Of a stretch of DNA of 64,000 nt, positions 3,215 through 31,282 are shown one piece after another. The notes beneath the pieces are model-generated. The model saw nothing but the letters and a program-made list of their open reading frames with translations, ran no database searches and was not told the DNA's origin. The stretch is taken from positions 248,001-312,000 of the forward strand of contig NW_020847607.1 of the NCBI RefSeq assembly GCF_003704095.1, in the 5' to 3' direction. Position 1 is the first letter of the stretch. Every line of letters starts with the position of its first letter. Both the position numbers and the translations under genes were made by a program. The stretch comes from Pocillopora damicornis. Its lineage: Eukaryota.

Positions 3215-6200
3215 TCACGGCGCATGTGCCATCGTTAGCAGTTCCTTGAGTCTCATTAGAGCACAGTCTGCCGTGAGACGAGCCTCGGGGTCTGGATCCC
3301 AACATTCTTGTACTGTCTGACAGAACGTTTTTAATCCCTATGTAATTGAAAGATAATAAATTATCAGTAAATACGATTGTTTAGTCATTTACAAATGATA
3401 AAGGATTTCCGGCCAAGTTCTAACTGCTACCAGAGCGGTACGATTTTATAAAAATTTCATGATCTTATTTGGCAGAGGGAGACCGGAAAGGAACAGTCAA
3501 AAAGCAAATTATTGGGGAGGGGAGGGTGATAGTGCTGGTGGATTTTGACACTCTGATCTAACTTTAATCCAAAGTGATGAAAAACGAAAGAAGAAAATGT
3601 CATTCTGCTATATGTAAAAGATGGCACCAAAATGTGGTCGACGGTTAACAAAAAATGACACACCAAGAGAATCATTTGTAAAAAATTCAAATTTGCCCCA
3701 TAGCGGTAGAAATAATTCAAAGAGGAAGAATTGGGTTTCTTTACCTTGATCTTTAAATTGATCGAACGCTACATGTACTCTCAGTTATTAATTGTTTTTG
3801 TTTTTTTTTTTCAAAGTCTTTCCTTACAATGCTGTTCAAAGCAAAGAAAACAGTTTTAATTGTATAACGAAAGTCATCCGTATTTATTATAATAGATCAC
3901 GGGAAATGACCAATCAGAACTCGCGTAATATTCAGTCCACTGAATAATTAACATATAGATTCCATGTCGCCGTGCGTTCGTTAAGTAATAGATCAGTACA
4001 GGCGTCAAAATAAGGTCAGAACTAAAAAGAGGCACAGGAGTGGGTAGCCGCGTGTATCACCGATGTGCTTGCCACATTTTGGCGTCCCTCGGTCATCTAT
4101 AACTGTACAGACACACGTCAAAATGGAATCTACTTGTTTTAAATGATGAAAATGCAAAATGTTGTCAATGGTGACGTCATCTACGCCTCTGTCTTCTAAC
4201 AGATAATGAGTAAAAGCCAATCGAAAAATTCGTGTGTACAAAATCAGCTTATCATACAAACATTGTTAGAGAGTAATATTACATTCTGTGATCAAACCTT
4301 ACCTCGTGGCTAGTGCATGGAAATTGTGGCCTGCACTGCTTTAGGGCAACAACTTCAACCATAACACTCAATGTTGCATCGGAATCAACCACTTCCCCAA
4401 ACGGTAGCTTATAGGAACCTGGGCTATGATCTGAAAGAAAATGGACCACAAGATTTCCTTTTGTTTTCGATAACAGTAAAAGAACCACGTGCAGTCAAAC
4501 TCGGTTTGTAATTATACGAGTGATTCACATGCTCGGAGGACCGCGAAGCAGGAGTCTGACTTACTACTCACGAGAATGATCACGAACAGAGTTGGACGAA
4601 ACAACGAGAACGAATGGCGCTAACTTTCAAATCACACAGGCATGACGCTTAAAATGTCCGCTTACATTTTCCAATTACAAGCATGGCTTGCGCGCTATCA
4701 TATTAATAATGGTAATAGGACTAAGTGGAGTCCAATTCGGTCTGCAAACATAGGAGTGACTAAAAAAGCGGACGACCACTAATACTTAATAATGACAATA
4801 GGACTGAGTGAAGTTCAATTCGGTCTGTTATCATACGAACGATAAACAAAATCAGACAATTTCGAAGCAGGAGTCCGATTTGTCAATCACGAGTATGATT
4901 ATAGACAGAATTGGACGACGTCACACAAAACAAATACATTTAGGACAAACATCTCCGGTACAGACAATGTCCTAAGTAAAAAATTCCTCCATTTTGAAAA
5001 TTCCCTGGCTTTTTTCCTTTTTTTTTTTTTTTAGGATAAGTGGTTGTTGTTATGGTTATTGTGATCAATTCAGTGATTGGTGGAGTAAGTTGAATGGACC
5101 TAATATGATTGGCTGCTTTAACTGTCCGATTACAGGTATCCGATTACAGCCAACTGTCCAATAACACTGTTCGATTAAAACTGTGCAGAATGATTAGAGA
5201 AAAATAAAGCAGCTGATGCATCAATCACATTTGAGGAAATTGTAAAGGCTACGATTGGTGCTGAAATCGGGTTACTGACCGATAACACAGCCTGTACCAA
5301 TCACTGAGCTGGGTCGTCGCCCGAGACCGCCATCTTGAAAATCGAGAACGGGACAAATATGCCCGAAGACAACATCGTTCTTAATTTTTTTTTTTCGATT
5401 TAGGAAAGAAAATTTACATGTTCAGCATAGGCTTGAAAAGTTACCTTACCTGCAACTGCGCACCGTGAAACAATCTCCCAAAGCACCAGTGCCATAGAAT
5501 AGACATCCATTTGTTTAAAGGTTTCTGTGCTGTCCAGGTCAACCGTGGTTAACAGTTCCTCAGGGGACATGTACCTGTATGTGCCAACTTGCATCTGTCA
5601 AAGTCAGACGAGCAGCAATTTGTTCTGAGTTAGCAGGAATAACAAGATATTGTACATCTTTTTTCCTAGGAAGGCCCTGAGAACGAATTTAAGTACTATA
5701 AACTCTCTAAGAGACCCTCATCTTGAAATCTGAGCCACCCTCCCGTCTCTCGCCCATAAGCCCTCTCCTTTTCATTCCGTTCTCCTCAAAAACTACAAAA
5801 TATAATATTTATTGCCATTTGTTAGGGTTTTGAAGTAGTCTCGTACCCAGACCTTCCATGGCCAAGTGGTTACAGTTGCACGGTAGGATCTGGGAAGGAG
5901 ATTGCCTTGGTAGTTGGTACACTACGCGTGGAATGATGGGAGAGTCTTTTTACCCAAACATAACGCACTGCACCCCCAGTCGCCCTTCCTTCCGCCTTCA
6001 GGCACTCTTTAATAAACCTCCCTACCTTTTCGCTTCCATCTTCGATACAACCCAGAGACAAAGCCAAGCCAAAGTCGGAGATAACGCTGGTTCCATCTTT
6101 CCTCACCAAAATGTTCGTGCTTTTTAAATCCCGATGGGCGACAGCAACTTTCGCGCGACCATCGGGAAAGCTTTCCGATTGAAGAAAGGCAACTCCGTTT

Positions 6201-9200
6201 GTTATACCGCTGGCCAAGAAGATTGCTTCATTCCAACTCAGTGTTTTCTTCAGCAGATATTCTCGAAGTGAACCATTCTCGCAATAATCTATGGCTAACC
6301 AAAGTGGTTCGTCTTTTCCTCCCAGAAATTCATTGTAAATTAGCTTAGAAATATTTGGATGATCTCCAGATAATAACTCGTAGATGGCACGCTCTTTCTG
6401 CCAGGACAATTTGGTTGCCTCTAGATAAACCTTTACAGCAACAGGCTGTTCTTTAATGCGACCCTTCCAAACAGTAGAATATCTTCCTTGGGACAACACT
6501 TTCTCTAAGCTTACAAGCCCTCTCTCTCCCACATCTGTCATAGTTCTTTGAGCATCCAGTCCGGTCACAGAGGAAATTTCAACCAGGTCTGATAACTTTG
6601 AATCCACAGAATGGTTGCATTTACGAAGGCGATTTATCAGCCCTGCGATAAGAACTGATATCAGCACGGCAGTGACACTGATCCACGTTATTGTAGAGGT
6701 GTCTTTACTTGATTTCTTTTGTATCTCAGGTTCTGGCTTTCTTTCCTCTTTCTTTCTTGATAAAACTTTTGGATGAGTAAGATTCCCTAAATATAAAAAA
6801 AAAATTAAAAAAACCGAAGTGAGATTATTTTAGGGCTGAGGGCGTAAATCTGAAATGATAAACAAGTGCTCATCTTCACATCAGATTCTGGTGGCTATTT
6901 GTTAAACAACCGTTTTCTTAGGCTGAACTGAAAAAAGATGCTATTTAGCACCATTCGAGAAAAATGTGCACTGCTGAGAGCCAATCAGATTGCAATAATC
7001 ACTAATGATTCCAAAATGCATTAAATAAAGGCCGAAATCTCATGGTTAGATGGCGGTCTCACCTCATACTACTAATACCACGACATCCCCTCTAAAGTCT
7101 CTATGCCATGGAAACAAAAGGAGTTAAGGGTGCCGTGACTGAATCTATCCCTGGTCCAGATATATTTCTGTTTTCCAGTAAGCGCTTCAAAGAATTATGG
7201 ATCATAAAGCAATTTTCAATTTAGTGGCGAAAGTAACCCGAGATTGTTTTCGATTAATGAATTCAGTCAGTGGTTTGTCTACAAAACTCGCGCCATCCTC
7301 TAAACCCAATCAGGCACAAAACGAAAACTAATCGTAACTTGGTCACCCGCGTTTTCCCGCGATTTTGATAGTTGTGGCTGCTTTTAATCTGATTGTTCAT
7401 TGGCTAATGATGATGTAAGCCTTTTTATGATTGGTCATTGTGATAACTTAGCTTTGGTTTTGGTTTTTTGACAGGCAATTAATTGAATACTGCCCTAACC
7501 AAAAATTGTTTGAGAGCTTTTTAGTTTAATAAGTTATCCCTCCATTTCAAACTCAACAGAAAGAAAACTTTGCTAAAAGAAATAATCTCAACAAAAGTCT
7601 TGTACTCACGTGTTTGTCGCAAATTTTTCGGTTTCATTCTCCTGAAAACTTGTTTTATATTTTTTATGACCGGCTCTATTGGATTTCTGTTACAGTTGCT
7701 GCCCTGACACAAACAAGTTCTCGTTCCGTTTAAAATCTTTGACTCACACTTCGCTTGGTAATGAGAGGAATTGGAAAAAGGGGGAAGCGGAAAACAACTT
7801 GTGAACATCGACAGCTTTTGGCCTTTCCAACGCCATGTTGCAAGGCATAAGTCGTCTTCTCTTCTACAGAGTTTTGTTCGACCGCAGTTGCTCTCACATA
7901 CACCCGTTGTCTTGTTACAATGTGCCAAAGATTTCCGACAAGATACACAGGAGCGACTGCAGAGTGTGGTTGTAATGTCTTCAAAGTTAACCAGGAAAAA
8001 AAAACAGTGTGCTTGTAAATTAGTTGGAAAAATTGCGACTCAGTTAGCATGATTAACCATTTACACCCTAATATCAGTATGTATATTCTCCATACTGATT
8101 TCCAGACATTTCCTAAGGTGTTGCCAAGGAGAATTTGTATAATGGTCAAGAGCTTGTGTAGTTGGTGATCATTTCCTTTATTCTCGTGACCTTTTATGTG
8201 TGATTCAGGGATGATGTTGTCAGAAGGAATTAGATTCTAGTCTTTCTTAGGGGTAAAAGGGTTAAGAAACAACGATACGTGTCAAGAGATCAACAATCCA
8301 AACACTCTCCACTTTTTCTACGCCCCTCCTCCCCTGAAAATTTCCCATTATTAGGAACTTAAGGGTGCGACCCCCAACCCCCTCCCTCCCCCCTACAGAC
8401 AAACGTGGACGTCGTGACATACGAATCGAGCACAGCAAGGTCCATACGTCAAATATTTCCCCGTCCAGTTCGACGAAACTCAGTAAATATGTATTTGCGT
8501 GTGACTGTTGAGTCTAAGGCGAACGCGCACCACAAAAAGATTCAGCAATGAAAAAGAAAAATTTCCTGCTTTCTCATCTCTTTCCTATTTTAAGCCTAAC
8601 TGTGCAATTAGAATTCGCCTTCTTGGAAAATGCAACAGAGCCGTGCTAGTCCCGAGCCCATGGCCGGGCGGCTTTTCCGGCCCGCAACTCATGTCAATTT
8701 GTCCGGCCCTGCACCCCTTAACTCTCATTAAAGTTTTCTATAGCATTGCGTGTGGGGGGCCTGTGTGCCGCGCGACAGGAGTCATATGATTAATTCAACT
8801 TAAGAGCTGCATGATAAATGTAACTTTAACTGCCGCTGTCTCCGCAATTTTATCGATTATCCTATACACAAATATTAGAATACTATGTTGTAAACAATTG
8901 TTGTGAAGTTAACAAAACCGGCGAACCTTGGCCCTGGTATAAACTTGTGACGAGAGAAATGAAAGGGGTAAGTTTTTCAAGAAGCTGTGGTGCTGCGTCG
9001 GTGGGGAGTACACGAGATAATGTAAATTGTCCACGGTAGAGAGCTTTTGAAGCTGATGTTTCGAACGTTTGCCCTTCGTTAGAGCGAAACATTACATCAG
9101 AATGAAAAACTCGAAAGGTCAGCTTTAGACTCTCTCTTTGTGACCAGAAAGGTTTTAAAAAACTCTTCGAAGTTACTTAAGAGTATTCTATGATACCCAT

Positions 9201-9320
9201 AGGCTAGTAACAAAATAATAATCAGAAATCCATCTTGCACGAAAAATACGACTTACCCAAAGCCAATATGAGTACTGTAAGAAAAAAATGCTGTGTAAAA
9301 TATATTTTTACATTTCCCAT
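3215..9320 (-). CDS. TGFBR2: TGF-beta receptor type II-like serine/threonine kinase receptor, 6 exons, 529 aa
   Basis: Exons 9320-9257 (signal peptide [21 protein letters not shown]), 7978-7610 (ectodomain with the 12-Cys TGFBR2 spacing, [27 protein letters not shown]), 6786-6026 (TM plus kinase [15 protein letters not shown]), 5594-5450 ([28 protein letters not shown]), 4430-4303, 3337-3215 ([13 protein letters not shown]..stop). All GT-AG, phases 1,1,0,1,0, total 1590 nt. No GS box, hence type II. Confidence 0.9.
4488..5280. repeat. Dispersed repeat with internally reiterated degenerate copies in TGFBR2 intron 4
   Basis: Three degenerate versions of taataggactgagtggagtccaattcggtctg..atacgagtgat (about 4488, 4710, 4795); a related reverse copy lies near 56740-56850. 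Boundaries approximate. Confidence 0.55.
8053..8265. mobile_element. TTAA-flanked MITE (piggyBac-like ends)
   Basis: Starts ttaaccatttacacccta, ends taggggtaaaagggttaa (inverted termini, TTAA both sides); related copies elsewhere in the window. Confidence 0.7.
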
Positions 9321-11799
9321 TGCGATCAGAGAGTAGCAAGTGGTAGTACCTGTCTTAAAGAAAGAAAAAGAAAAACACGCTACCCACATTGCGTCCGGTC
9401 TGCGATTGTGAATTAATTTCCCCTTGATATGAATTTCATGATACGCAGTTTAGAGAAAGAGTTACTTGTTTTTGTATTCAAAAACACCTTGTATACTTTG
9501 TATTTACGCTTGATAACAGAAATAATTGAGCATTATATCGCAAGCGTGTAGCAATAATTAACCATCAAATGGAACTATTAGTAGGCGCATTGGTGCTAAT
9601 TAGAACCGGTTGCGCACTGACGCTAATGCGAAATGCATACATAGATCATTATGCCTCGAAAAAAAATCGGGCTATTTTCTCTTCAAATACGTTCTCATTT
9701 AAGACAAACTTTTGCGGTCTGTTTGGACTATCTGGTTGGACTAGAACTTTCCTCTATTTTTTCGCCTTTGTAAAGCACAGCGTCTCACTTTTAAACAATA
9801 ATTGTTATGGTCATTAACACCATGGTTTTGGGAACAAAGCGAAGGATTTGGCGCACACGTGTTCTATTTTCTGAGTTTAGGTGGACAGTGACTTTCGCAC
9901 AGCGGCCCCTTTGCAGCCACACAAGTTCACACAGTTTTTTTCATTTTGAAATTTTTTATAAAACATCGGGCTAACCATCCAGCAGAGATAATTTTTAAAT
10001 ACTGCCTATTAGAAAGAGGTTAAATTTTTTTGCATACGGCCAATTTTAATGCATCATTAAAACATAGGGCACGTGTTTATAACAAAATCTACATTGCAGG
10101 AGTATCATATGACTCGAGGCAGAAAGTTATTCTGTCTAAACAATTCGAAAACAACCCCTGCTGCTTTTCTTTCCTTGTCATGTTTTAATAAGTATGGAAA
10201 CAATTTTTTCTAAACTCTATGCGTAAGGTTAATTTTCAGGAAAAGCTTGAAATGTTAATAATCACCCGAGAGGTATACTTTCTTTAAAAGTTCCCCATTG
10301 ATAGCTTTACTAGATTCAAAAACGTCACTTTAAATATGGTAACCTTCTTGTAGCAAGGCAAAACTCTCTTATTTGTGATAAACATGAAATTTGATTGCTC
10401 GGGTTAAACTAAACGCAAAACATGATGTGATCTGAACTTCGAAAGACATGAATTAATTTTTTTTATCAATAAAATTTACAGGCAGGGGTCTTATTTTAAA
10501 AGGAAATGAAGATTAGCATTTAGAAAGTTTCCGGCAAATTAGTCCATGTCTGCTGTGGCTCTAAGATCAAATGAAATTTTAAAGGGATCGCTCTTTACTG
10601 AAAATGATCTGAATTGTAAATTGTGTCTCCATATACGCCAAGTAATCCGGTGAATTAAGATGCAAACTTATGATTAAAAGTGTTATGCCGACTTTACCCA
10701 ACACATGTGCGTGTGGTAATAAAAATTCATGAAACAGAACTCCAGGATTAAGGGATTGGACAAAAAAATGCATTAAAACCTTGTCTGGTTCATCTGAAGA
10801 CACAACACAGGAAAGCATGTGTGCGATTTGTTTGGCATTTCATGGGAGCGCAATCAAAATAAAACTGATATCCGCTGAGAGACACATCATACGTAAAATG
10901 GCCTTTGGAACTGTCCGGTGATAGTTCTTTGTTAGCACTGTTTGTTGATGTGGCACGGAAGCAATTGATATTTCGATATGTCGAAAGGAGCGGTGGATAT
11001 GGTCGGTGAAGAAAGACTATTTTGGTTGGATCTGATGGTCGCAGCGGCAACTCAGTTCTGTTTCACAATGAACACGGAGTTTACGCAAGAAACAATCATA
11101 CTCTGGTGACACGAAACAAACGAGGTTTAAGGTTGGTGAAATTTGTTAGTTCAGCCCCTCTATTCTTTAAAATGCTACGTTAAAATGAACCTAACCATCA
11201 ACAATAGAGATAACAAGCGGATGTGGCTCTGATTTTATGATTTTAGTTGTGACGCGAAGGAGAGTCGGGAACAAACGTAGTACGTGAACAGCACATACTT
11301 AGAGAACTTGACGATCGCGAGAGTCACGCGTCGCGCGCGGACACGGGCTTAAGTCCACACAAACTCCACGCTTCTAAGAGGCTAATGAGCAACACTAAGA
11401 CACAAGAAGGATCAAGATGTTTAATATTTTACAAGTGGGTCGGTTCCAATTTCCATACGACAGAGAACAATTCCTAGCTAATCACACGTTTTATGTTTAT
11501 CAAAAGTTCCTCTATGTCCCTTTTTTTCTTCGTTTTATGAAATGTAACGACATGTACTGTTAGACTTGGAAAGATCGTAACGTCGGTGATGTCAACAAAG
11601 CTATTGGTGTGCATAGTGTATATCCCGGGCGCTTAATCGAGGTGCCCTTTAATCGGGAAGAGAGAGAGCGCTGTTGACTGTAAAATAATGTCAGATTTAC
11701 GGCGGACTAGGAACGTTTCGCGAGGAAAGCCAAATCAATTCTTATCATTGGTTTATGGGTAGTTACAATCAAAATACGGTGAAAGTAAGCCATTCAATA

Positions 11800-12014: not shown

Positions 12015-15000
12015 TGTCAAATTCAACTGTCATTACGTACCGTCCGTGGTGATATGATGTTATCTGTCTTTCATGACATAAAATCGAGGCTTATTTGTCC
12101 TGCTTTATGCTTTCAGTGTGTTTTCTTTCCTTTGAGGATTTTTTATTCATGTCAATATTTTTTACTTCGTAAAGAAGAAGAAAACTTATTTTTGTGCGAA
12201 TCACGCATTTTGCATGTGTTCTACTGTTTCAGTGGTCGCCCTAGGTTGAACAATTTTCACTTCTGTGTTCAGTTGTTAATTAAGTTTGTTCACGAATAGT
12301 AATTGGCATTGTTTGTATTCCTAAAACAATTTTTGCTCCATTAAACACAGAGCCAGCGTCCTATGGGGTGCTTGATACATTTTGTAGAGGTTTCTCAGTA
12401 TTCAAGATCGACAAGTCTGATTATTCTACAATGAGTGTTTATTATAATCCTTGGTCTCAGAGAGCATAGTTTCCTTTCTTAGATAGTCCCTTGATAAGTG
12501 GCTTCAATACCAAACACTAGTGCGGCGTCCAAATCCGGTAATATTGGTACATGTTCCTGTGAAAATCGAACCCTTCAATTTGAAATGACGGAGTTGAGAG
12601 AGAGAAGTTTTTTTATCATGTCTCGGGCGAGGGACAAAGAGAAAAATTTCGAGTACCCATGAGGAGTCGAAAATACCGTAATAATTCATGGAATTACGGT
12701 ATTTTAGTGCTACGTGACGACAAGAAATATACGCTACATATATACAAGGGAAATATTCTCGCGCTTGGAAAACACTTGAGGAGCTAAACCATAAGATAAG
12801 GAGAGCCTTAAAGGTGCTTGACGAGGGCAGGAGCCCATTACTTAGTAAAGGCTCCTGACGAAGAGTAATCTTTTTCTAGTTCCTAGTCCTCTAAACAACC
12901 GGGATGAATTGACCGTGACGACATGGGAGAAAGTAGAACAAGAAATGTGCGCTAGAGAGCGGAAAACAAAGAAGAGACAGTTCTATCTCCCACGAGAAAC
13001 CGAGCCAGTAATCTCGAGAGAAAAAAGAACTTTCCTTTTTACCACGTTCGTTACAAGTGAACAACAATTTTCCAATGACGCATCCTCTATTGATGCGAAT
13101 GTCTTTAGTCCTTTGTCGATTCTTTTCAGTCACGGCATGGTATATCAGCCCTCGTTCACTCCTTTCCGCATTCCTGCGTGCCAAGTAAAATACAAATGAA
13201 ATGCAATAATTCTATCCTGCCTTTTGAACGTTTCGAAACTTTTACCATCGTTTAATCATTATAAAAACCTCCTGCTTGATTTCGAAAAGATAGGAAATGT
13301 TCTCAGACATTTAAAAACCACTAGAGGGAATTTGAAACAGTTCTCACAAATGTTATGAATAGTTTTGGTGACCTTTATCTTTTCTAGATCAAGAGATATT
13401 TTCACTGCGGTTTTTTGTTTACTCGACACACTGATGAGTGGAATACTAATCCTTGAACATGTCAAAAGACCGAAAATAACAGCCAATAAGAAAGACAAAA
13501 AACTATTACCACACTTTAAAAGACTGATGTTCCGAAGAGACTCTTTCACACCAAAAACAAAGAGCCACTATAGTTCGTATTGATTACTTCCTCACAAAAT
13601 CATCTCTTGTCAAGTATAATTTACGCTGCAACAAAAGCCTTCTTTTATATCTTATGATTTGTTTCTTTAATCTCTTTTTCGAAGATATTTGAGTCAATTT
13701 TCAACTGGCTATATTTCATTTCATTCTATTCCTGTCCCGCAAAATTCATGGTAGCAAACTGACCAGTGTAATGCGTCGCGAATCAGTAAAAAATGTTTTC
13801 GTTACAAATGCATCCTTGAACTCCATATACTAGCCGATATAAAATCACCTGTATCATGAATTCCAACAACGTCGCTTCAGTCGTGAGAACAGTTGTTATG
13901 TTCTGTCTAGGCTTTCAGACAAAAAAAGGCACGTTTAATATTTCTTCGCTTCCGACGGAAAAGTTTTGAACAAGTGATGCATATCTGCATCCAGTATTCA
14001 CCCGAGAACACAACAAGCTTTTGAAAATGATTAAACGCCAAATTTTGAACGATCACAGTATGGTTGTTAAACAACGCAGATATGAACTCAAGGATTCAGC
14101 AAATCGATAGGTAAGGCTGTTTTGTATATATTTGAACGGCAAACTCAGTACAAACCGCATCAGAGAGATTCACTGACTGTAATTTAAATTTTTGTCAGCT
14201 TCTTCAATTGAAGTTTACCGACGAGGACCATTTCGTTACTCTTTTGTCTCTCGTTAAGTTCATTATATTTTGGTATGCGTAGACCTTAAAGATGTAAAAT
14301 TTCGAAACAATTCTTTTGAAGCACCAAATTCGACACCGCGCTTTTGAAGCAGGGTTGAGAATGCGGAGGAATGGGTCGAGAAGCGCGTAGCTTCAGGGTT
14401 TGGTTTTCGGGTTTTCTCGTTGTTGTTTGGCCATAAACCACAATTACGCCTACAAACCCCAAAATCAAAAGCAAGGTATGCCATGAAGCCTGCCAAGCCT
14501 CAAGTGCAATCGAAAACTCTGATATCAATTTCTCACACATCGGGAATAAACTTGAGCTACTACCGCGCCAGTTGCTAGAACACAGAAAGAAACCTTCCCG
14601 CTTCTCTGTATGGCTTTGCGGGTTGTGCACTCAGGCCATAAATCAAAGGAGAAATCTCTTGATCCTTAACCTACAAAACGGACTTCGAACTGGGTTGTTA
14701 AGAGGCATTAATTCATTTGCCGCTCGAATGCACTGCAGGTTCGCTAATTGACAGCTTCTCAGACAAACTTAATTTTTATTATTCCATACTTTCTGAATAA
14801 ATCTTATTAATCCTATCATACACACGTGGCATACGATAGCCTTGTCTGGTGTAGTTTGCCGAAAGAAGTGTGAATACTTTCTGCTCGATCAACTAGCTTT
14901 CCCAAGGGTGACATTATTGCAATCTTGACTCCAATACCCATAACACGTGAATTTCGAGCGTTCTTTGCGTGAAAATTTCGTTTAGAGAGAGATTCAAAAA

Positions 15001-22900: not shown

Positions 22901-25900
22901 TGTCCATTGTCTTCTGTAGCGTCACAACAAGTATTGAAAAAATAATATCTTTGGTTCTATTGAAAATAGTTCACTAATTCAAAGTTTCTATGATACACTG
23001 ATCAAATTTAATGGATTCTTTTACAAGGCTGCAACACAGGCAGGTGAAATTAGTTTGAATATAGCATTACAGCAAACACTGAGAAAACGAAAATTTTGAG
23101 ACATGATTCTTTCTTTAATTTATTTTAAAATGGAGTCAACAGTGGCACTGCATTATTTCTTGGCAAGGGAAGCTAAATTGAAATTTACTAACAAGCAAAA
23201 ACTCTATGAAAAGTTGACCAGACTACAGTGGTGAACAAACAAACAAATCCACTAGAAACTCAAGATGATCAACTGATATGCGATCCTGCTTAATCACCAG
23301 TTTTTACATTGCTCATTGGAACGAACAATGGCCACTTCATAATAGAGAAAACAATTGCTTAACTCATTCATATTAATTATTCAAACACATCTGAAAATAG
23401 AGATGTAAACTCATCTATCAAAACCAGTATGTGTATGGTCTTATATGTGTACTATGTGCATTTGACTTGTATATCTTGGTCCCCTTATCTCTGAACTACA
23501 CTGTGCATGTTCACTGGCTGAGAAAGGGTGGTCTAGATGGCTTAAGGTCATGACTTAGATACTGAGTCCTCTGAGGCCTGTACAGCATGAGCAAAGGCCA
23601 AATAGTTTTGTGTCTGGTTTAACCCAACTCAGATTACAAGCATTTTATCACGTAACTGCTGCCCTTTCTCCATCACCTTTATTATCTCTTTCTTCTGTCA
23701 GGGCCCAAATGCTTTCTTCAGCCCTGCACAGTCCATATTGTATTAGACAAGCTGGCTTGAATCAGGCCAAAATGATATACAAGAGTCTTTAAGGAATGCA
23801 TCTCTCTTATCTCTCTATGCTTTGTTTTTACTTTGGTCATCCTTGCAATTTTTTATTGATATATACATGTAAAGCCTTCTTCAAATTACTGCCTCATTTT
23901 ATAAAATGTGGTTGTCCATTCTCGATACACTTAATAGGAAATCAATTTTATGTCGAACAAAAAGTTTACATTCCTATTTTGCATTCTGTTGGGTAATGAA
24001 GTGCACTCAATAGGCTTAACATTATAGTTTTTTCTTAAAATTCTGTCAAATAGTCCTGATACAGTCATAAGTCCCATTAGTTACCCAACATACTGTTAAA
24101 TAATTCACAATTTGGATCAAAACCTGTATTGGCCTTTCTTTACAGGAGATCCCAAAAGAGATGGAAAAAGCCCTCGACTGGTGTGTCATTTCTGTAGCAA
24201 GTCTAACAGCAGCCAAAGTGATTGTACATGGATCAACACAACTTGTGATGAGACAAGCAAATACTGTTACACAATGTGGATAAATGACTCTTTAAGTAAA
24301 GGAGGGGTACAACGCGCAGGGTGCTGGCAGCAAAATGCAAACTGTGAAGATTCATTGTGTTTGGGTGAGAAGACACATAATGGGAAAGGTTTTTTCTTTT
24401 GCTGCTGTAATGAAAATCTTTGTAATGGGAATTTCAGTTTACGCCCTGAGACAACAAGATCAACAGTAACTTCTGAACCAAGTAAGTTGAGAATTGAAGA
24501 TTTTACTATCCATATACTTAATGTAACTTAAAACCTCTCATGAACCAAATTTATATGAATTATTTGAACTCATATTTTCTGAAAAATTAAATCCTGGAAC
24601 ATGTGAGAGGTGATGCGAAAAAAATATTACACAAAAAGCTATTAATAAGCAAGGACTAGTAAAGAAAGTTCAATCTGGATTAAGAATGGATATATTTGTG
24701 TTGATCTATGATTAAACCTACGAACATCGAATGGTGGCATGATGCACATTTCTTGTTTGTTGTAACTCATTTTGTTGATCAAAGGGTTGCAATTTATCTA
24801 CATGTACACATATCTTCTCATGCCATTAAGAACCAAGTGTGCCATTAAGCCAGTGTGATTGAGACCTCATGCTTGAAATCAAGGTTATAGTGATCAGTTA
24901 GTCTAAGATGGCGCCCAAACCCTGAAATAGAACAGCATCTGGAAAGAAGCGACACAAACAGTGTGCATTCTCCCAGTGTCAAATGCAATGAATAAATTAT
25001 CAAGGTGTTGTAATCTCCATCATGCATGACCTTTGCGTCTGCCCTCTGGTGGCAAACAGGTTTGCCCAGGAAATCTTTGTGTCACTTAATATTATCATTA
25101 TTTAAGTGTACACTTGGGTTCAAGTGTAGTGGTTTTCTTATCATGCAATGTTAAATAAGTAACAAAGTCCTTTGATAAAAACTTCTTAGTTCTTAAATTT
25201 CAATGACACAAATATATGAAGTTGGTTTCATGTAGTGATTTTTCCCTCCATTTACATTGAAAACAAGCATGTGAATTGAGAAATATAAAAAGGAGAAGAG
25301 TTCATGGGTTAAAGCCCAAGAAGCCTGAGGCAGAAATGAAATAAAATTTGACAAGGAATGACAAGAACATCTCGCTGAAATGGTTATGAGCTCATACTTA
25401 ACTCAGTCTTGGCTGCTAGCAACCAATCAGCAGTCATCAAGAAAAGGTCTGCCGCAGCAGGTCCAAGATGCCTGCAACTTGAGAAATTGAAATTGCCGGC
25501 AAGTGCAATTGTGCCTACAGGCTAAATTCCACTTGCTAGCGGGTAAGGCTTCTAGGTAGGTTTTGTTATACACGATAACTGCAAGTTCCCCCAAACTTTT
25601 TGTCTGTTGAGAGTCTCTTAGGACTGCCTTGGATGGTTCTGTGTCTGTGTTTCTTTCGACTTTTGGCATTTGTAGCAGCCAGGGTGTTGAGAGAAGTTGG
25701 CGCTTTGTCACTTAAAGACATGAAATGTATGAAAAACTTAAGATTGAATTAACTTCTTTTGTTTTTGCACTATTGTGATCTTTTAAACAAATTATTAGGA
25801 TGTGAAAAGTTAACAGATTGCATTGCAATTTGGCTGGATTGCTATTTTAAAATGCCAACTGAAAAAACTGTGTTTGGGATTTCAATTTGGTGAAAAGAGT

Positions 25901-28900
25901 CTCCTGCAATGGCCAGTGGTAAATTTGGGGAGGCAAACTTGACAGGAAATTGCATAACAGGATTAACCCCTGTAAGTGGAATTATACAGAGGCCCTATCA
26001 GTGTGGTCGGATATGATAGCAGATTAGTTCACTCAAAGAGATACTGTCAATTTCTGATTTGTTCTGCCTTTGTGAATTTCAAAACAAGTTTTGCCAAAAT
26101 AGCATATGCCATAACCTTTCAATTGATGTTTAGGCATTTGTGGTGACACTTAAAATGGCATGTGAACAATTTAAATCACAAAGGACATGGGAAAGGTCTA
26201 CCACATCTTAAACTGGGTAAAACATGACTGAGAAATTATCACTTTCCGTGGAGAACTCAAAAGGATTCTGTGTGCTTTGTGCTAAGATATGTTGTAGTAC
26301 TAAACTCACTGGTTGTTTGTTGAAATACAATCATGTAAGCGAAATGGCTGTCCATTGTACTCGTAACCTGTAATTTACGAGTAGAATCCAGTTAAAGTCG
26401 ATGAAATAAAGATTTTTGGCTATGGTGACCTAAACAGTCCCAGTTTAGAGCCCTGTGCAAGAGTTATTTTCACTCGTGGATATAGGAAGCATAGGAATGA
26501 AAGTAATGTTGGGATTTAATATGCAAATTTTGTGATGTTAGCAGAGCAAGAAACTTTCTTTTCAAGTCACTTGTCCATTTGAACAAATGTGTGTTTATTT
26601 TACAACCAAAAGCTTACTAATCTGCAAAATGTCAACTAGTGGATCAGACGTGGAATTCACTCATAAATTAATGGTTTAACTTTGCATAAAAAATTAGACA
26701 CATGTAATGCACACAAATTGTTAATAACTATCTGTAAGCTGTACTTATTTTTATTTGTAGCAAAGATACACCCTCCTAGTTAAGTGATCGCAGTAGCATG
26801 TCACTCCCTACCAACAAATCAACTTGAAAGCTCTGTATGTATATACGAAAACAAGATCTGATGTAGAAAAATATGTCTGCAATGGGTTACTTTTTCTGGG
26901 AAATCTTGATCCATCATCATTGACGCCAGAAGGTCCCACTGTCCCATTTGTTTGCCATTTCAGGAGGCAAGATAACCTCCTGGCACGGTGTGAGTCATTT
27001 GTGAACTTTTATGGGCTAAAATCCTGCATTCGCTTTTGGGATGGATACAACCACTTTGAGGGAATTTATAGGGTGTATAGATTTACAGATTTTTGTCAAA
27101 TTTCGCCAAAACATTCCAGGGATAATGACAAAGTGAAGCATGTTGGGAAGTTTTGATATTTGAAATATTTGTCCCTTGGTGTTCAATTATGCAACACACC
27201 TTGCATATTTTTCACTACTCCAACTTAAGATGCTGATATCTAGACAATCAATCAAAATGTCATAAAGCCTGACACTCTTTTGTTGATTGATGCCTTGGGA
27301 ATAAGACTATGCAGCCATTTTGCTTGTGCTGTGGCATCTGATACCCAATTGATTCAACAGAAGAACCTTTGGTCATTTCACGCCTTACCAGCTTCTGACA
27401 CTTCTTTAAAGGAAAAGTTGCTTAAATTATATTTTTAACGTAAACAGCAGTTTGCAAGCTTTCTTCTGATGTACAATTTGCTAGGATATTAGTGAAACCA
27501 GCACACATTCAAATTTTTTCCCAAATGACACCTGCGAAGGTGGGAAGTAACCTCAATAGAGGTTCTGTTGTATTTAAACTTTTGCTCTTTGTTCTCAACA
27601 GTAACTACAGGAGGAATAATACAATATACCAACAAACCTTCAAAACCTGACAGGCGTGGCCCCACATACACACTGTTGTATTTAGTGGCTCCAATTTTTG
27701 TAATAGCAGTTATCCTGATAATTGGGTTTTTTATGTATCGCCGCCACAAAACACCATTTCCGACCCGTATCCTGGAAGAAGAACTTCTCAACTCAATCCC
27801 TCCACCATCCCCAGAGCTGGGCTTCAGACCCATTCAGCTTGTGGAAGTCATTTCACAAGGAAAGTTTGGCACAGTATGGAAAGCGGATTATCTCGAAGAT
27901 GTAGTTGCTGTTAAAGTTTTCCCAATGGCCCACCAGACTGCCTGGGTCTGTGAAAAAGATATCTTTACAACTTGCAACTTGAAACATGAAAATATTCTTA
28001 AATTTGTTGCGGTAGAGAAGCACAACAATGGCTCATGCTCTGAGCTGTGGTTGATAACAGAGTATCACGAGCATGGATCTCTTGGCGACTATCTTAAGAG
28101 CCATGTAGTAACGTGGCCAGAGCTGTGTTCAATGGCAGGAAGTATGGCTAATGGCCTTGCATATCTGCATACAGAAGTATTAGAAAGTTCTTTCAAACCC
28201 TGCATAGCCCACAGAGATTTCAAAAGTAAAAATGTGCTGGTCACAAAGGATCTAACCTGCTGTTTGTCTGATTTTGGACTGGCAATGAAGTTTGACTCTG
28301 GTGGGGATCCAGGGGAGACACATGGCCAGGTGAGTTAGGCCTCAGTGAGCTGCATAGCTTGTAGGCAAACAGCATAGGCAGCTAGGCAAAGGGAGCAGTG
28401 GGGCTACACTTGAGAGGACTTNNNNNNNNNNCCCCCCAATTTTTGTTTCTGGATATTGCTAGTGTAGTATACAATTAGTGTGGCAAAGCATTTGGTTTTA
28501 TTAGGGTTGTGCATCAGCAAAGTCCTATTTAGTATAATGTTTTTTATCATAACAGCTCTGGCCTGAGTTCTAGTAGGAAACATAAAAATGTTTTGGTAGA
28601 TTTGCATAAGGGTATGCATGCAGCTTGATATATGGAATGACCCTCCTTTGCAAAATCATTCCAGTAGGTATGATATGTGTATCATGGAAATTTTAAGGGA
28701 AATTTTTTGGTTGAAAAGAGAGCATTTTACTGATTTAATCAGTGACTTATGCCCAAAAGAGATGCTGAATTTGCAAAGTGAGCAAGCTGCAAAGTATGAT
28801 ACTTTGCCCTATTCAATGAAATAGAATGCTGAAATACCCTAAAACAAGTGATAACAGAATATCAAAGGGGTGGTATGATGGAATATCCTAAAATGCAGAA

Positions 28901-31282
28901 TTCCTTGTTGTATGAAGCAAGAAACTAACAAAAATGGAATTCCATAAAATATTAACATGAAAAGAAGCATTGCTTAATCACTATTAGAGCCTCAAGGATT
29001 GGGGAATCATGAGGCTTTCTAGCTATGTCTTTAATTTGTTAAGATATTACTATTGCTATCATTATTATTATCATTGTTAATATGATTATGGAGATGCTGC
29101 AGGTTTTCTGTTTTGCACATGAATACACTACCTTCTAGCATCACTATACTGTATGCTACATACAGTATAATGCCACAGTGCTATAAAAATTGTGCAATAT
29201 CAGTAGCCACACACAGTCTGACTGTCTATTTTTACAGGTTGGAACAAGACGTTACATGGCACCAGAAGTACTTGAAGGAGCCATCAGCTTCACAAGGGAG
29301 TCATTTTTGTACATTGATATGTATGCCTTTGCTCTGGTTCTTTGGGAGTTGATGTCCAGATGTACTGCTGCTGATGGTGAGCAAATCCATGAATACTGTA
29401 CCAGTATATTTCTCAGATGGCAGCTCATCTTCCAGGATCATTACTTTAATTAACCCTTTACACCATAACATCAGTATTGATTTTCTTCAGACTCTTCTTC
29501 ATGCATTTCCTTTGGTGTTGACAAGGACAATTCGTGTAGCAATTAAAGCTTCTTGGGTTGGCGATCATTTCAGTTATTGTCATGATGATATTAAATGATG
29601 TGGCAGTATTGCTGTGAGGAGAAATTAGATGCTGGTCACTCGTTGGGGTCAAAGAGTCAATTTTTATCAGTGAGGGTCAAAAGATCATTTATTTCATTTG
29701 ATTATGATCAGATTTCTTAATGGGAACAAAGAACCTGCAGAAATTTGCCTCACTACCAACATGTGGCTTTACAGCTCAGTTGGTTGAAGCATCCAACTGG
29801 TATCTGGATAGCATGAGTTCCTAAAGCCGGAATATTTTTAGCCTTATAGCCTACAAATGAGGATCTTTTTTTTAATTGAGCATTATGCGCAGTTCACAAT
29901 ATGATTTATTTCAATGGGTTGGAATATTATAAATACTTTATTTCCACATGCCACAAAGAGTATTTTTCCTTGGTTCTAAAGTGGAGAATATTTTTTTGTC
30001 AGGTCCTGTTGATGAATACAAGTTGCCATTTGAAGAAGAAATAGGATCACATCCTTCCTTAGAGGACATGCAACAAGTTGTAGTACAGCAAAAGATCAGA
30101 CCTAAATTCCGACCAGACTGGTTTGTCCACTCGGTACAAACATTTACCTTTTACTCTCTAACACCAGAGAATTTAAGAAAGATGTTTTTCATCTTGTCAC
30201 GAGCATGGGACAAATAAAAATTCTGAGTCCCCATGAGGAATCAAACTTCAGACCTTCGGATGGTCTGTATCCGAAGGTCTGAGGTTTGATTCCTCGTGGG
30301 GACTCAGAATTTTTTTTTTGTCCCACGCTCCTGACAAGACGAAAAACATCTTTCTTAATTCCTTACCGAGCTCAAAAACTTACCATCTCTATTATCTCTA
30401 TCAACACCAGAGAATTTGTTCGACAATCAAAAGCTTCTTTAGTTGGTGACCGTTTCCTTTATTTGCATGACCTTATTATTTGATTCAGGGGTGATACTGT
30501 GTGGAAAAATGAGATGCTAGTTACTCTTAGGAGTCAAAGGGTTTTGTAGCATCCCTTTGGTGGTTTCAATAACATGATACAAATAGGTACATGCAGTGAG
30601 AATAGCAGGCAGCTAGTTTTGAAGGCCTTGAGAATCTCCTGTTCCACAGGAGATGCAGATTCCCCATGGAAAGTTTGAAGTTCTGGACTCTTTCTGTGGC
30701 ATTTTTCTGCATTTGGAGGTCCATTTAAAATTAAACATGCGGTTTTTGATAATAGTGAACAGTTTAAACCAGAAATCTTACTTGAAAGAAATCAGTTTGA
30801 ATTTAAGATGCTATCATTTGCATGGTATAGTTTTGTCAAGATTTTAAATCAGGATTGGTTTAGAGAAACTGCAGATAAGAATTTTTTTTTTTTTTTTGAC
30901 AATCAGGAGCTTCTTAAAATGTTCATCATTTTCTTCATCCTCTACCTTTATATTTGGTTCAGTGGTGATACTTTAATGAGAAATTAGAAGCTAGTCACTC
31001 TTAAGGTTTAAAGTGTTCAGGGAGTTGTGGTATTCATAAAAATGTCTCAGAATACTAAATGATTGATTGTTATTTTGTACCTAGAATATGGCGAGCCTTC
31101 TTCAAACTATTGAAGAATGTTGGGATCAAGATGCAGAGGCTAGGTTAACAGCTCAGTGTGTCGCAGAAAGGTTATCTCAATTCAACACAAATTCAAGCTT
31201 CGATTTGGCGCATTCTCCCACTGTTACAACAGTAGTTAACAACACCAACATTACTCCATCTTCAAAAGAGTCATCAATATAA
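19917..31282 (+). CDS. ACVR2: Activin receptor type II, 6 exons, 529 aa
   Basis: Exons 19917-19974 (signal peptide [19 protein letters not shown]), 24146-24481 (ectodomain [19 protein letters not shown]), 27602-28329 (TM, PPPSP, kinase [20 protein letters not shown]), 29238-29376 ([23 protein letters not shown]), 30003-30133 ([19 protein letters not shown]), 31085-31282 ([16 protein letters not shown] stop). All GT-AG, phases 1,1,0,1,0, total 1590 nt. Confidence 0.95.
29450..29660. mobile_element. TTAA-MITE family copy in ACVR2 intron 4
   Basis: ttaaccctttacacc start, degenerate ggggtcaaagagtcaa end; body similar to 8053-8265. Confidence 0.65.
29735..29910 (+). mobile_element. Degenerate tRNA-derived SINE-like fragment
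   Basis: A-box-like cagctcagttggttgaagcat within an intron; no intact cloverleaf. Confidence 0.45.
30175..30402. mobile_element. Fold-back tRNA-SINE insertion with 15-bp TSD
   Basis: Flanked by aacaccagagaattt at 30160-30174 and 30403-30417; about 87-bp inverted arms around a 7-nt loop; arms match the SINE at 60744-60864. Confidence 0.8.

Follow-up and report, generated by a model that had tools for sequence, protein, structure and literature searches.

The pairing of TGF-beta with the type II receptor TGFBR2 is often stated to be of deuterostome origin. The TGFBR2 proteins of vertebrates and invertebrate deuterostomes combine a 12-cysteine ectodomain, one transmembrane (TM) helix and a kinase that lacks a GS box, and a large exon for the TM helix and the N-terminal kinase lobe (N-lobe) is followed by small exons for the C-terminal lobe (C-lobe). 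They also have the kinase signature DPEARLTA, a short C-terminal tail and a 15-residue kinase motif that occurs in invertebrate deuterostomes in near variants only. We analyzed a stretch of 64,000 nucleotides from the stony coral Pocillopora damicornis (assembly GCF_003704095.1, contig NW_020847607.1, positions 248,001 to 312,000; hereafter the window) that contains a gene sharing these features. We conclude, with a probability of roughly 0.72, that this gene is a coral TGFBR2 orthologue encoding a single-pass type II receptor serine/threonine kinase. The conclusion is carried by a TGFBR2-type ligand-binding ectodomain that is spliced to the kinase, and by the kinase itself.

For Nematostella, an early survey reported only two type II receptors (PMC2657120), and another study gives bmprII and actRII as the BMP type II receptors of this animal (PMC11846459). 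A TGF-betaRII subclass is recognized elsewhere (PMC3169577). Three sponge ligands have been assigned to TGF-beta sensu stricto (PMC8235796) and work on TGF-beta in symbiosis and symbiont tolerance has been summarized (PMC8698432). In the published P. damicornis receptome the term 'type II receptor' denotes G protein-coupled receptors, and its text does not treat TGF (PMC9897584). A search of the open literature, exclusive of supplements, found no paper reporting TGFBR2, ectodomain included, from a cnidarian. What is already known is that RefSeq names coral kinases TGF-beta receptor type-2-like, two of the models being without the ectodomain. What is new is that the ligand-binding exon belongs to the transcript, that a ligand of the cognate type is present, and that three receptor subfamilies are linked.

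The initial annotation of the window, made from the DNA letters alone, had proposed a true TGFBR2-type receptor in an apparent cnidarian. The host is indeed a cnidarian and not a deuterostome; it is a pocilloporid scleractinian, and the closest named proteins are from Stylophora, Oculina and Porites. A small fraction of the words of the stretch (0.07-0.15) was present in runs labelled coral metagenome. Contamination with deuterostome DNA was considered and rejected, given an identity to vertebrate TGFBR2 of 31-41% over the aligned parts and the presence of orthologues in many coral assemblies.

Gene structure and transcript

The exons of the gene are listed in Table 1 together with the related genes discussed below. 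To follow the transcript, Logan contigs of four RNA runs (X1, X3, X5 and X9) were mapped on window positions 3400-9399. X1 and X3 belong to one study (P1) and X5 to another (P2), and all three are polyA runs. The minus-strand GT..AG joints 4430/5450, 5594/6026 and 6785/7609 were each present in X1, X3 and X5, that is in three runs from two studies; no such joint occurred among the RNA contigs of X9 over the mapped stretch. In the same three runs exon 2 was represented by contig pieces 7609-7981 that were joined to exon 3. One X5 contig (record 14, 2021 letters) extended from 8089 through exons 2-5 and then ran on for about 500 letters past the mapped stretch. Exon 5 is followed by a GTAAGG donor after 4303 and aligns with the Stylophora and Oculina models. 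Exon 6 likewise aligns with coral models; the RNA mapping began at 3400, and the splice to this exon was deduced from its AG acceptor and homology. All exon phases were consistent, every exon frame was open, and the G+C content of the region was 38-42%. The RNA links a TGFBR2-type cysteine-rich ectodomain, a TM helix and an intact GS-less kinase in one spliced polyadenylated transcript. In the comparisons described below the exons were searched, scored and placed in trees singly and not as a joined spliced model.

Table 1. Exons of the coral TGFBR2-like gene and positions of related receptor and ligand genes. Positions refer to the window unless a contig is given.
Feature	Position	Strand	Content	Evidence
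Coral TGFBR2-like gene	3215-7981	minus	spliced, expressed	
Candidate exon 1	9320..9257	minus	putative 21-residue hydrophobic signal peptide; possibly wrong	ATG, TGG/GTAAGT donor, phase
Exon 2 (E2)	7981..7610	minus	TGFBR2 (ecTbetaR2)-type ligand-binding ectodomain, several N-x-S/T sites	RNA contigs and PF08917
Exon 3 (E3)	6786..6026	minus	stalk, TM helix (19-residue stretch), juxtamembrane part without GS motif, kinase N-lobe to DFG	RNA contigs, Pkinase 68.5 bits
Exon 4 (E4)	5594..5450	minus	activation segment and helix F, with the 15-residue TGFBR2-type motif	RNA joints
Exon 5 (E5)	4430..4303	minus	kinase C-lobe (YKLPFGEVV...RPQFP)	joint 4430/5450; contig pieces 4302-4430 in X3 and X5
Exon 6 (E6)	3337..3215	minus	kinase end (14-residue stretch), short tail, stop	AG acceptor, open frame, homology
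ACVR2-like gene	24247-31219	plus	ectodomain exon near 24247-24474, kinase exons 27673-31219	
BMPR2-like gene	C4242:375750-379198	minus	same contig as the window; N-lobe split in three exons	
TGF-beta sensu stricto-type ligand (L013)	C1732:126333-126632		nine-cysteine mature domain	

A rule-based scan for the start of the gene gave a candidate exon 1 with an ATG at 9320, a GTAAGT donor after 9257, a hydrophobic core and the correct phase. The initial annotation had placed the upper limit of the gene at this same position, 9320, which is a guess at the first exon. Two findings count against this candidate. Spliced contigs from X1 and X3 carry 27 and 153 further letters 5' of 7981 that have no placement in 3400-9399, and the contig depth at 9200-9399 was 0 in X1 and 3.9 in X3. 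First-exon candidates at 12689 and 16199 from the same scan were without support.

Two stretches upstream of exon 2 had an unusual contig coverage. Over 8441-9399 unspliced RNA contigs were found with 12 and 18 other letters and 12 and 19 gaps over ca. 700-900 bases. A related repeat at another locus is their probable source, and the candidate first exon overlaps with this stretch. In intron 1, at 8052-8193, each of the four runs had a contig depth in the thousands, with many loose ends; this short stretch is likely to be part of a repeat or transposon with high expression.

The models of Stylophora pistillata (P0003) and Oculina patagonica (P0006) are orthologues of the Pocillopora gene with identical exon boundaries, and in the kinase part P0003 is 81% identical. 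Both models are without the ectodomain and have no PF08917 match, whereas in Pocillopora the ectodomain exon is spliced to the kinase. The N-terminus of the Stylophora model matches the ectodomain exon (window 7604-7726) in another reading frame, which suggests that the gap in this model is a mis-modeled exon rather than a real loss.

Ectodomain and kinase compared with known receptors

The ectodomain gives the stronger evidence for TGFBR2 orthology and is a line of evidence independent of the kinase. A Pfam scan of exon 2 returned PF08917 (ecTbetaR2) at 25.9 bits (cut-off 25) and nothing else at E≤1, thus no match to Activin_recp (PF01064), in agreement with the receptor class first proposed. 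When the whole 234-Mb genome (234,350,878 bases in 4393 contigs) was scanned in six frames with PF08917 there was one match, which was exon 2 itself (26.1 bits, genome-wide E 0.0013). For comparison, the same model scored amphioxus TGFBR2 at 26.5 bits and Saccoglossus TGFBR2 at 15.5 bits. Solved TGFBR2 ectodomains matched exon 2 at E values of about 7e-5. The top PDB match of the ectodomain open reading frame (ORF), to the WRAP-T designed propeller proteins, was dismissed as a repeat artefact with single-stretch i-Evalues of 14 to 210.

The claim that the ectodomain keeps all 12 cysteines at human TGFBR2 spacing, with a one-residue insertion, was borne out by an alignment of 14 rows (the window, five other coral copies, six vertebrates, Branchiostoma and Saccoglossus). 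All rows have the 12 cysteine columns in common, save for one column with Y in Branchiostoma. Spacing of the first eight cysteines is as in the human protein except for an additional residue between the third and the fourth, and a W is located at +4 from the seventh. Amphioxus and Saccoglossus TGFBR2 likewise have the one-residue insert, the shorter later loops and a TCLC motif. Unlike vertebrate TGFBR2, the coral protein has two later loops that are shorter (15 vs 19 and 10 vs 14 residues in comparison to Pongo P0069), other residues at two ligand-contact positions that are treated below, and an additional 13th cysteine, four residues upstream, that is not conserved among corals.

A word search limited to proteins of 95-301 residues identified 16 homologous ORFs that were 59-99% identical to exon 2, and PF08917 is on record for 10 of these. 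The alignment of the resulting 17 coral copies has 35 invariant columns, which include the cysteines from the fifth onwards. A hidden Markov model (HMM) of the coral ectodomain, searched against 326 proteins, matched the 16 coral ORFs and otherwise TGFBR2 proteins only, with scores of 50 bits for Saccoglossus, 30-35 bits for Branchiostoma and 13-52 bits for vertebrates. The model had no match among the 49 full-length rows of ACVR2, BMPR2/AMHR2 and type I receptors. Comparison of the 17-copy profile with receptor families by hhalign gave 98.5% for TGFBR2 (E 1.8e-15, 95 columns, score 86.5), a value that may be somewhat flattered as the TGFBR2 segments were cut at coral-HMM matches. The corresponding values were 74.5% for BMPR2 (score 35.1), 12.9% for ACVR2, 0.6% for AMHR2 and 0.5% for type I receptors.

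As a separate observation, 11 fish and frog TGFBR2 proteins gave two tandem matches to the ectodomain profile (P0065, P0123, P0080, P0072, P0129, P0126, P0059, P0094, P0108, P0110 and P0067). Judged from these double matches, they carry two tandem ligand-binding domains.

In the kinase the VAVK, HRD and DFG motifs are intact, and no SGSG was found when the exon 3 translation was inspected for a GS box. Two kinase signatures had been put forward as TGFBR2-type. The first, FKQxD[VI]YSMALVLWE, held up: it is carried by the window, by all three coral models and by 100 of 103 vertebrate TGFBR2 sequences, and is absent from all 49 ACVR2, BMPR2/AMHR2 and type I rows. None of the three invertebrate-deuterostome TGFBR2 sequences has it other than as a near variant. 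The second, DPEARLTA, is found in 99 of the 103 vertebrate sequences as well as in the window and does differ from the DAEARLTA of the neighboring ACVR2-like gene, but it is not exclusive to TGFBR2 because 3 of 25 BMPR2/AMHR2 rows have it too. The stop codon lies 11 codons past RLKEL in exon 6, without a long BMPR2-type tail. Among solved kinases, exon 4 scored best with TGFBR2 (54.6 bits, compared to 42 for TGFBR1 and 37.8 for ACVR2B) and so did exon 6 (35.6 bits, compared to 30.7 for BMPR2). On such scores the TGFBR2 signal of the kinase sits in the C-lobe, and the counts of the two signatures point to the same conclusion.

The closest named relatives of exon 3, in a search limited to proteins of 175-558 residues, were the RefSeq 'TGF-beta receptor type-2-like' proteins of Stylophora (72%) and Oculina (55%), followed by a Porites protein. 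With the Stylophora orthologue as the query, the 120 hits listed comprised 103 vertebrate proteins, 16 of coral type and one sturgeon record flagged as contamination. PF08917 was present in 101 of the 103 vertebrate hits listed, and none of the 103 was named an activin or BMP receptor. When exon 3 was searched exhaustively, 8544 proteins reached E≤0.001. Among those ranking high against exon 3 were P0134, P0136, P0138, P0146 and similar proteins of 1300-2900 residues with 4-9 receptor-kinase-like stretches, possibly tandem kinase arrays that were merged into single gene models.

The phylogeny of type II receptor kinases was examined with a maximum-likelihood (ML) tree built under the LG+C20+F+G4 model from 69 rows and 302 columns. 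For this tree 91 of the 103 vertebrate TGFBR2 sequences were thinned out and 95 of 147 new representatives were omitted because of a partial kinase or a low score. Clades were named by exact look-up of their members, being Branchiostoma, Antedon and Saccoglossus for TGFBR2; Aedes, Centruroides and Corticium for ACVR2; Branchiostoma, Centruroides, loach, Channa and Myxine for BMPR2; and rabbit and Erpetoichthys for AMHR2. The four coral rows (100/100) joined the 15 deuterostome TGFBR2 rows with an ultrafast bootstrap of 100 and a Shimodaira-Hasegawa-like approximate likelihood ratio (SH-aLRT) value of 95, and were not nested in the ACVR2 or BMPR2 clade. In approximately unbiased (AU) tests the union of the corals with ACVR2 was rejected (p 0.013), as was that with ACVR2 and BMPR2/AMHR2 together (p 0.040). 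By these comparisons the orthology of the kinase to TGFBR2 is supported well but not overwhelmingly.

A candidate ligand is encoded in the same genome. The mature domain of L013 scored 130 bits with TGF-beta3/2/1, compared to 76 bits with the next family. The suggestion in the initial annotation that the receptor could serve TGF-beta sensu stricto in cnidarians gains support because this ligand gene exists alongside it. The genome also has at least two loci for type I receptors with a GS box, one on C2137 for which TGFBR1 ranked first (174.3 vs 169.1 bits for BMPR1B) and one on C905 for which BMPR1B ranked first. We propose that the ectodomain binds a dimeric coral TGF-beta ligand, upon which the constitutively active kinase would phosphorylate a TGFBR1/ALK4-5-7-like type I receptor in its GS region, leading to Smad2/3 activation. 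Both the ligand binding and the transphosphorylation are predicted from the sequence of the coral receptor.

Conflicting evidence and alternative explanations

A number of observations weigh against the gene being a TGFBR2 orthologue that serves a TGF-beta ligand, and several of them concern the kinase. Against solved kinases, the N-lobe encoded by exon 3 scored 103.1 bits with BMPR2, 101.6 with BMPR1B and 97.7 with ACVR2A as compared to 88.1 with human TGFBR2, and its similarity to human TGFBR2 thus does not exceed that to BMPR2. In the main tree the window is represented by exon 3 only and the full-kinase signal comes from the models of three other corals. A quick tree of the N-lobe only (159 rows, with 24 rows omitted and vertebrates thinned to six) united the TGFBR2-like group at an SH-aLRT value of 85. 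The AU test, on kinase data alone, did not reject a union of the corals with BMPR2/AMHR2 (p 0.102). Outside the kinase, the coral ectodomain HMM missed the crinoid 'TGFBR2-like' proteins.

The AU result and the preference of the N-lobe exon for BMPR2, together with a long coral stem branch (0.5 in the main tree) and the 74.5% obtained with BMPR2 ectodomains in hhalign, could be explained if the gene were not an orthologue at all. In that case a type II receptor evolving rapidly in cnidarians, nearer to BMPR2/AMHR2 or an early branch, would have been drawn to TGFBR2 by long-branch effects and by ancestral features of the three-finger fold. We regard such an origin as improbable since two independent domains, the ectodomain and the kinase C-lobe exons, agree on TGFBR2. 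The likeness to BMPR2/AMHR2 consists of the type II kinase and of DPEARLTA in the three rows mentioned above, whereas the coral gene differs from this group by the absence of the long tail and by a much weaker profile match (35.1 vs 86.5), and the coral already possesses a BMPR2-like gene of its own.

The N-lobe tree also placed several small groups beside TGFBR2 (P0140, P0143, P0165, P0277, P0139, P0162, P0160 and P0173), none of which has a database name. A receptor kinase of the homoscleromorph sponge Oscarella lobularis (P0193/P0389), called 'BMP receptor type-1B-like' in RefSeq, stood beside the crinoid TGFBR2-like protein in this tree, and Pfam finds no ectodomain in it.

Further points of conflict are found at the ligand-receptor interface. 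Human TGFBR2 has two acids, Asp32 and Glu119, which we take to be the ligand contacts that pair with Arg94 and Arg25, respectively, of the ligand (1KTZ). In the window the Asp32 position, after the second cysteine, is occupied by Arg and the Glu119 position, before the last cysteine, by Asn. The Arg is near-constant in the coral copies that cover the site, with Gln in P0314. These positions are Glu/Glu in amphioxus and Asn/Asn in Saccoglossus and so vary among invertebrate TGFBR2 proteins too. In the coral ligand L013, as compared to TGF-beta3, Arg25 is kept and Lys-Asp-Gly-Glu replaces Val92-Gly-Arg94-Thr. The replacement of both receptor acids and the Gly at the Arg94 position of the ligand would fit a reading in which the gene is a true TGFBR2 orthologue that binds another of the ca. 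20 TGF-beta-family members. The genome does contain 20 PF00019 matches, of which one is activin-like and could be such a ligand. This explanation appears unlikely in view of the co-occurrence of a TGF-beta-type ligand and a TGFBR2-type receptor in the genome and of the retained Arg25. The Asp and Glu beside the lost Arg94 are, moreover, compatible with a swapped salt bridge, in which the receptor Arg would face these ligand acids; for the one species pair compared, such a rearrangement is possible.

The remaining point of conflict in the gene itself is that the signal-peptide exon was not confirmed by RNA contigs over 3400-9399. The missing first exon, and the absence of the ectodomain from the RefSeq models of two other corals, one of them flagged as low quality, would agree with a decaying or non-signaling copy, either a pseudogene or a decoy. 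We consider this very improbable because the frames of all exons are open, the catalytic motifs are intact, spliced polyA RNA is present and the ectodomain columns are conserved as described across the 17 coral copies.

Accepting the gene as a TGFBR2 orthologue, the last reservation concerns its age, as the cnidarian sample consists of stony corals only. Within this sample, the proposal that the TGFBR2 subfamily is older than the cnidarian-bilaterian split was supported. Because a coral has both a TGFBR2-type receptor and a TGF-beta-type ligand, the signaling pair, as judged from sequence, probably predates this split. The TGF-beta/TGFBR2 module would then have been present in the cnidarian-bilaterian ancestor and lost in some lineages.

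Linked receptor genes and significance

The ACVR2-like neighbor is arranged head to head with the TGFBR2-like gene, has the same type II architecture and has identical kinase intron positions. It differs in having an Activin_recp-type ectodomain with a CCC...CN motif and DAEARLTA in the kinase; the N-lobes of the two are 39% identical, and its exon falls in the ACVR2 clade of the ML tree. The assignment of the BMPR2-like gene is based on summed tblastn scores of 343-400 bits with three BMPR2 queries, compared to 319 for ACVR2 and 282 for TGFBR2, the latter two totals each including one unrelated hit near 371 kb. The TGFBR2-like, ACVR2-like and BMPR2-like genes all lie within ca. 128 kb of one scaffold.

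Elsewhere in the genome, three mature domains of the TGF-beta family (L016, L017 and L019) are located within 15 kb at C1425:354272-369349. Two members of this trio are near-identical and have short open frames of 139-163 codons.

A tentative scenario, to which we give rather less than even odds, combines a TGF-beta module in the cnidarian-bilaterian ancestor with an origin of TGFBR2, ACVR2 and BMPR2 by local duplication, the three still being linked within the ca. 128 kb, and with an interface rewired by the swapped salt bridge. The presence of three type II subfamilies on one scaffold provides a testable picture of the origin of the family.

The ligand-binding exon is absent from the two RefSeq models examined, which indicates that it is overlooked in current coral gene models. 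If the gene is what we propose, the origin of the TGF-beta/TGFBR2 pair moves to before the cnidarian-bilaterian split, which implies losses in other lineages, and coral biology would gain a concrete receptor with which the effects of TGF-beta on symbiont tolerance can be tested.

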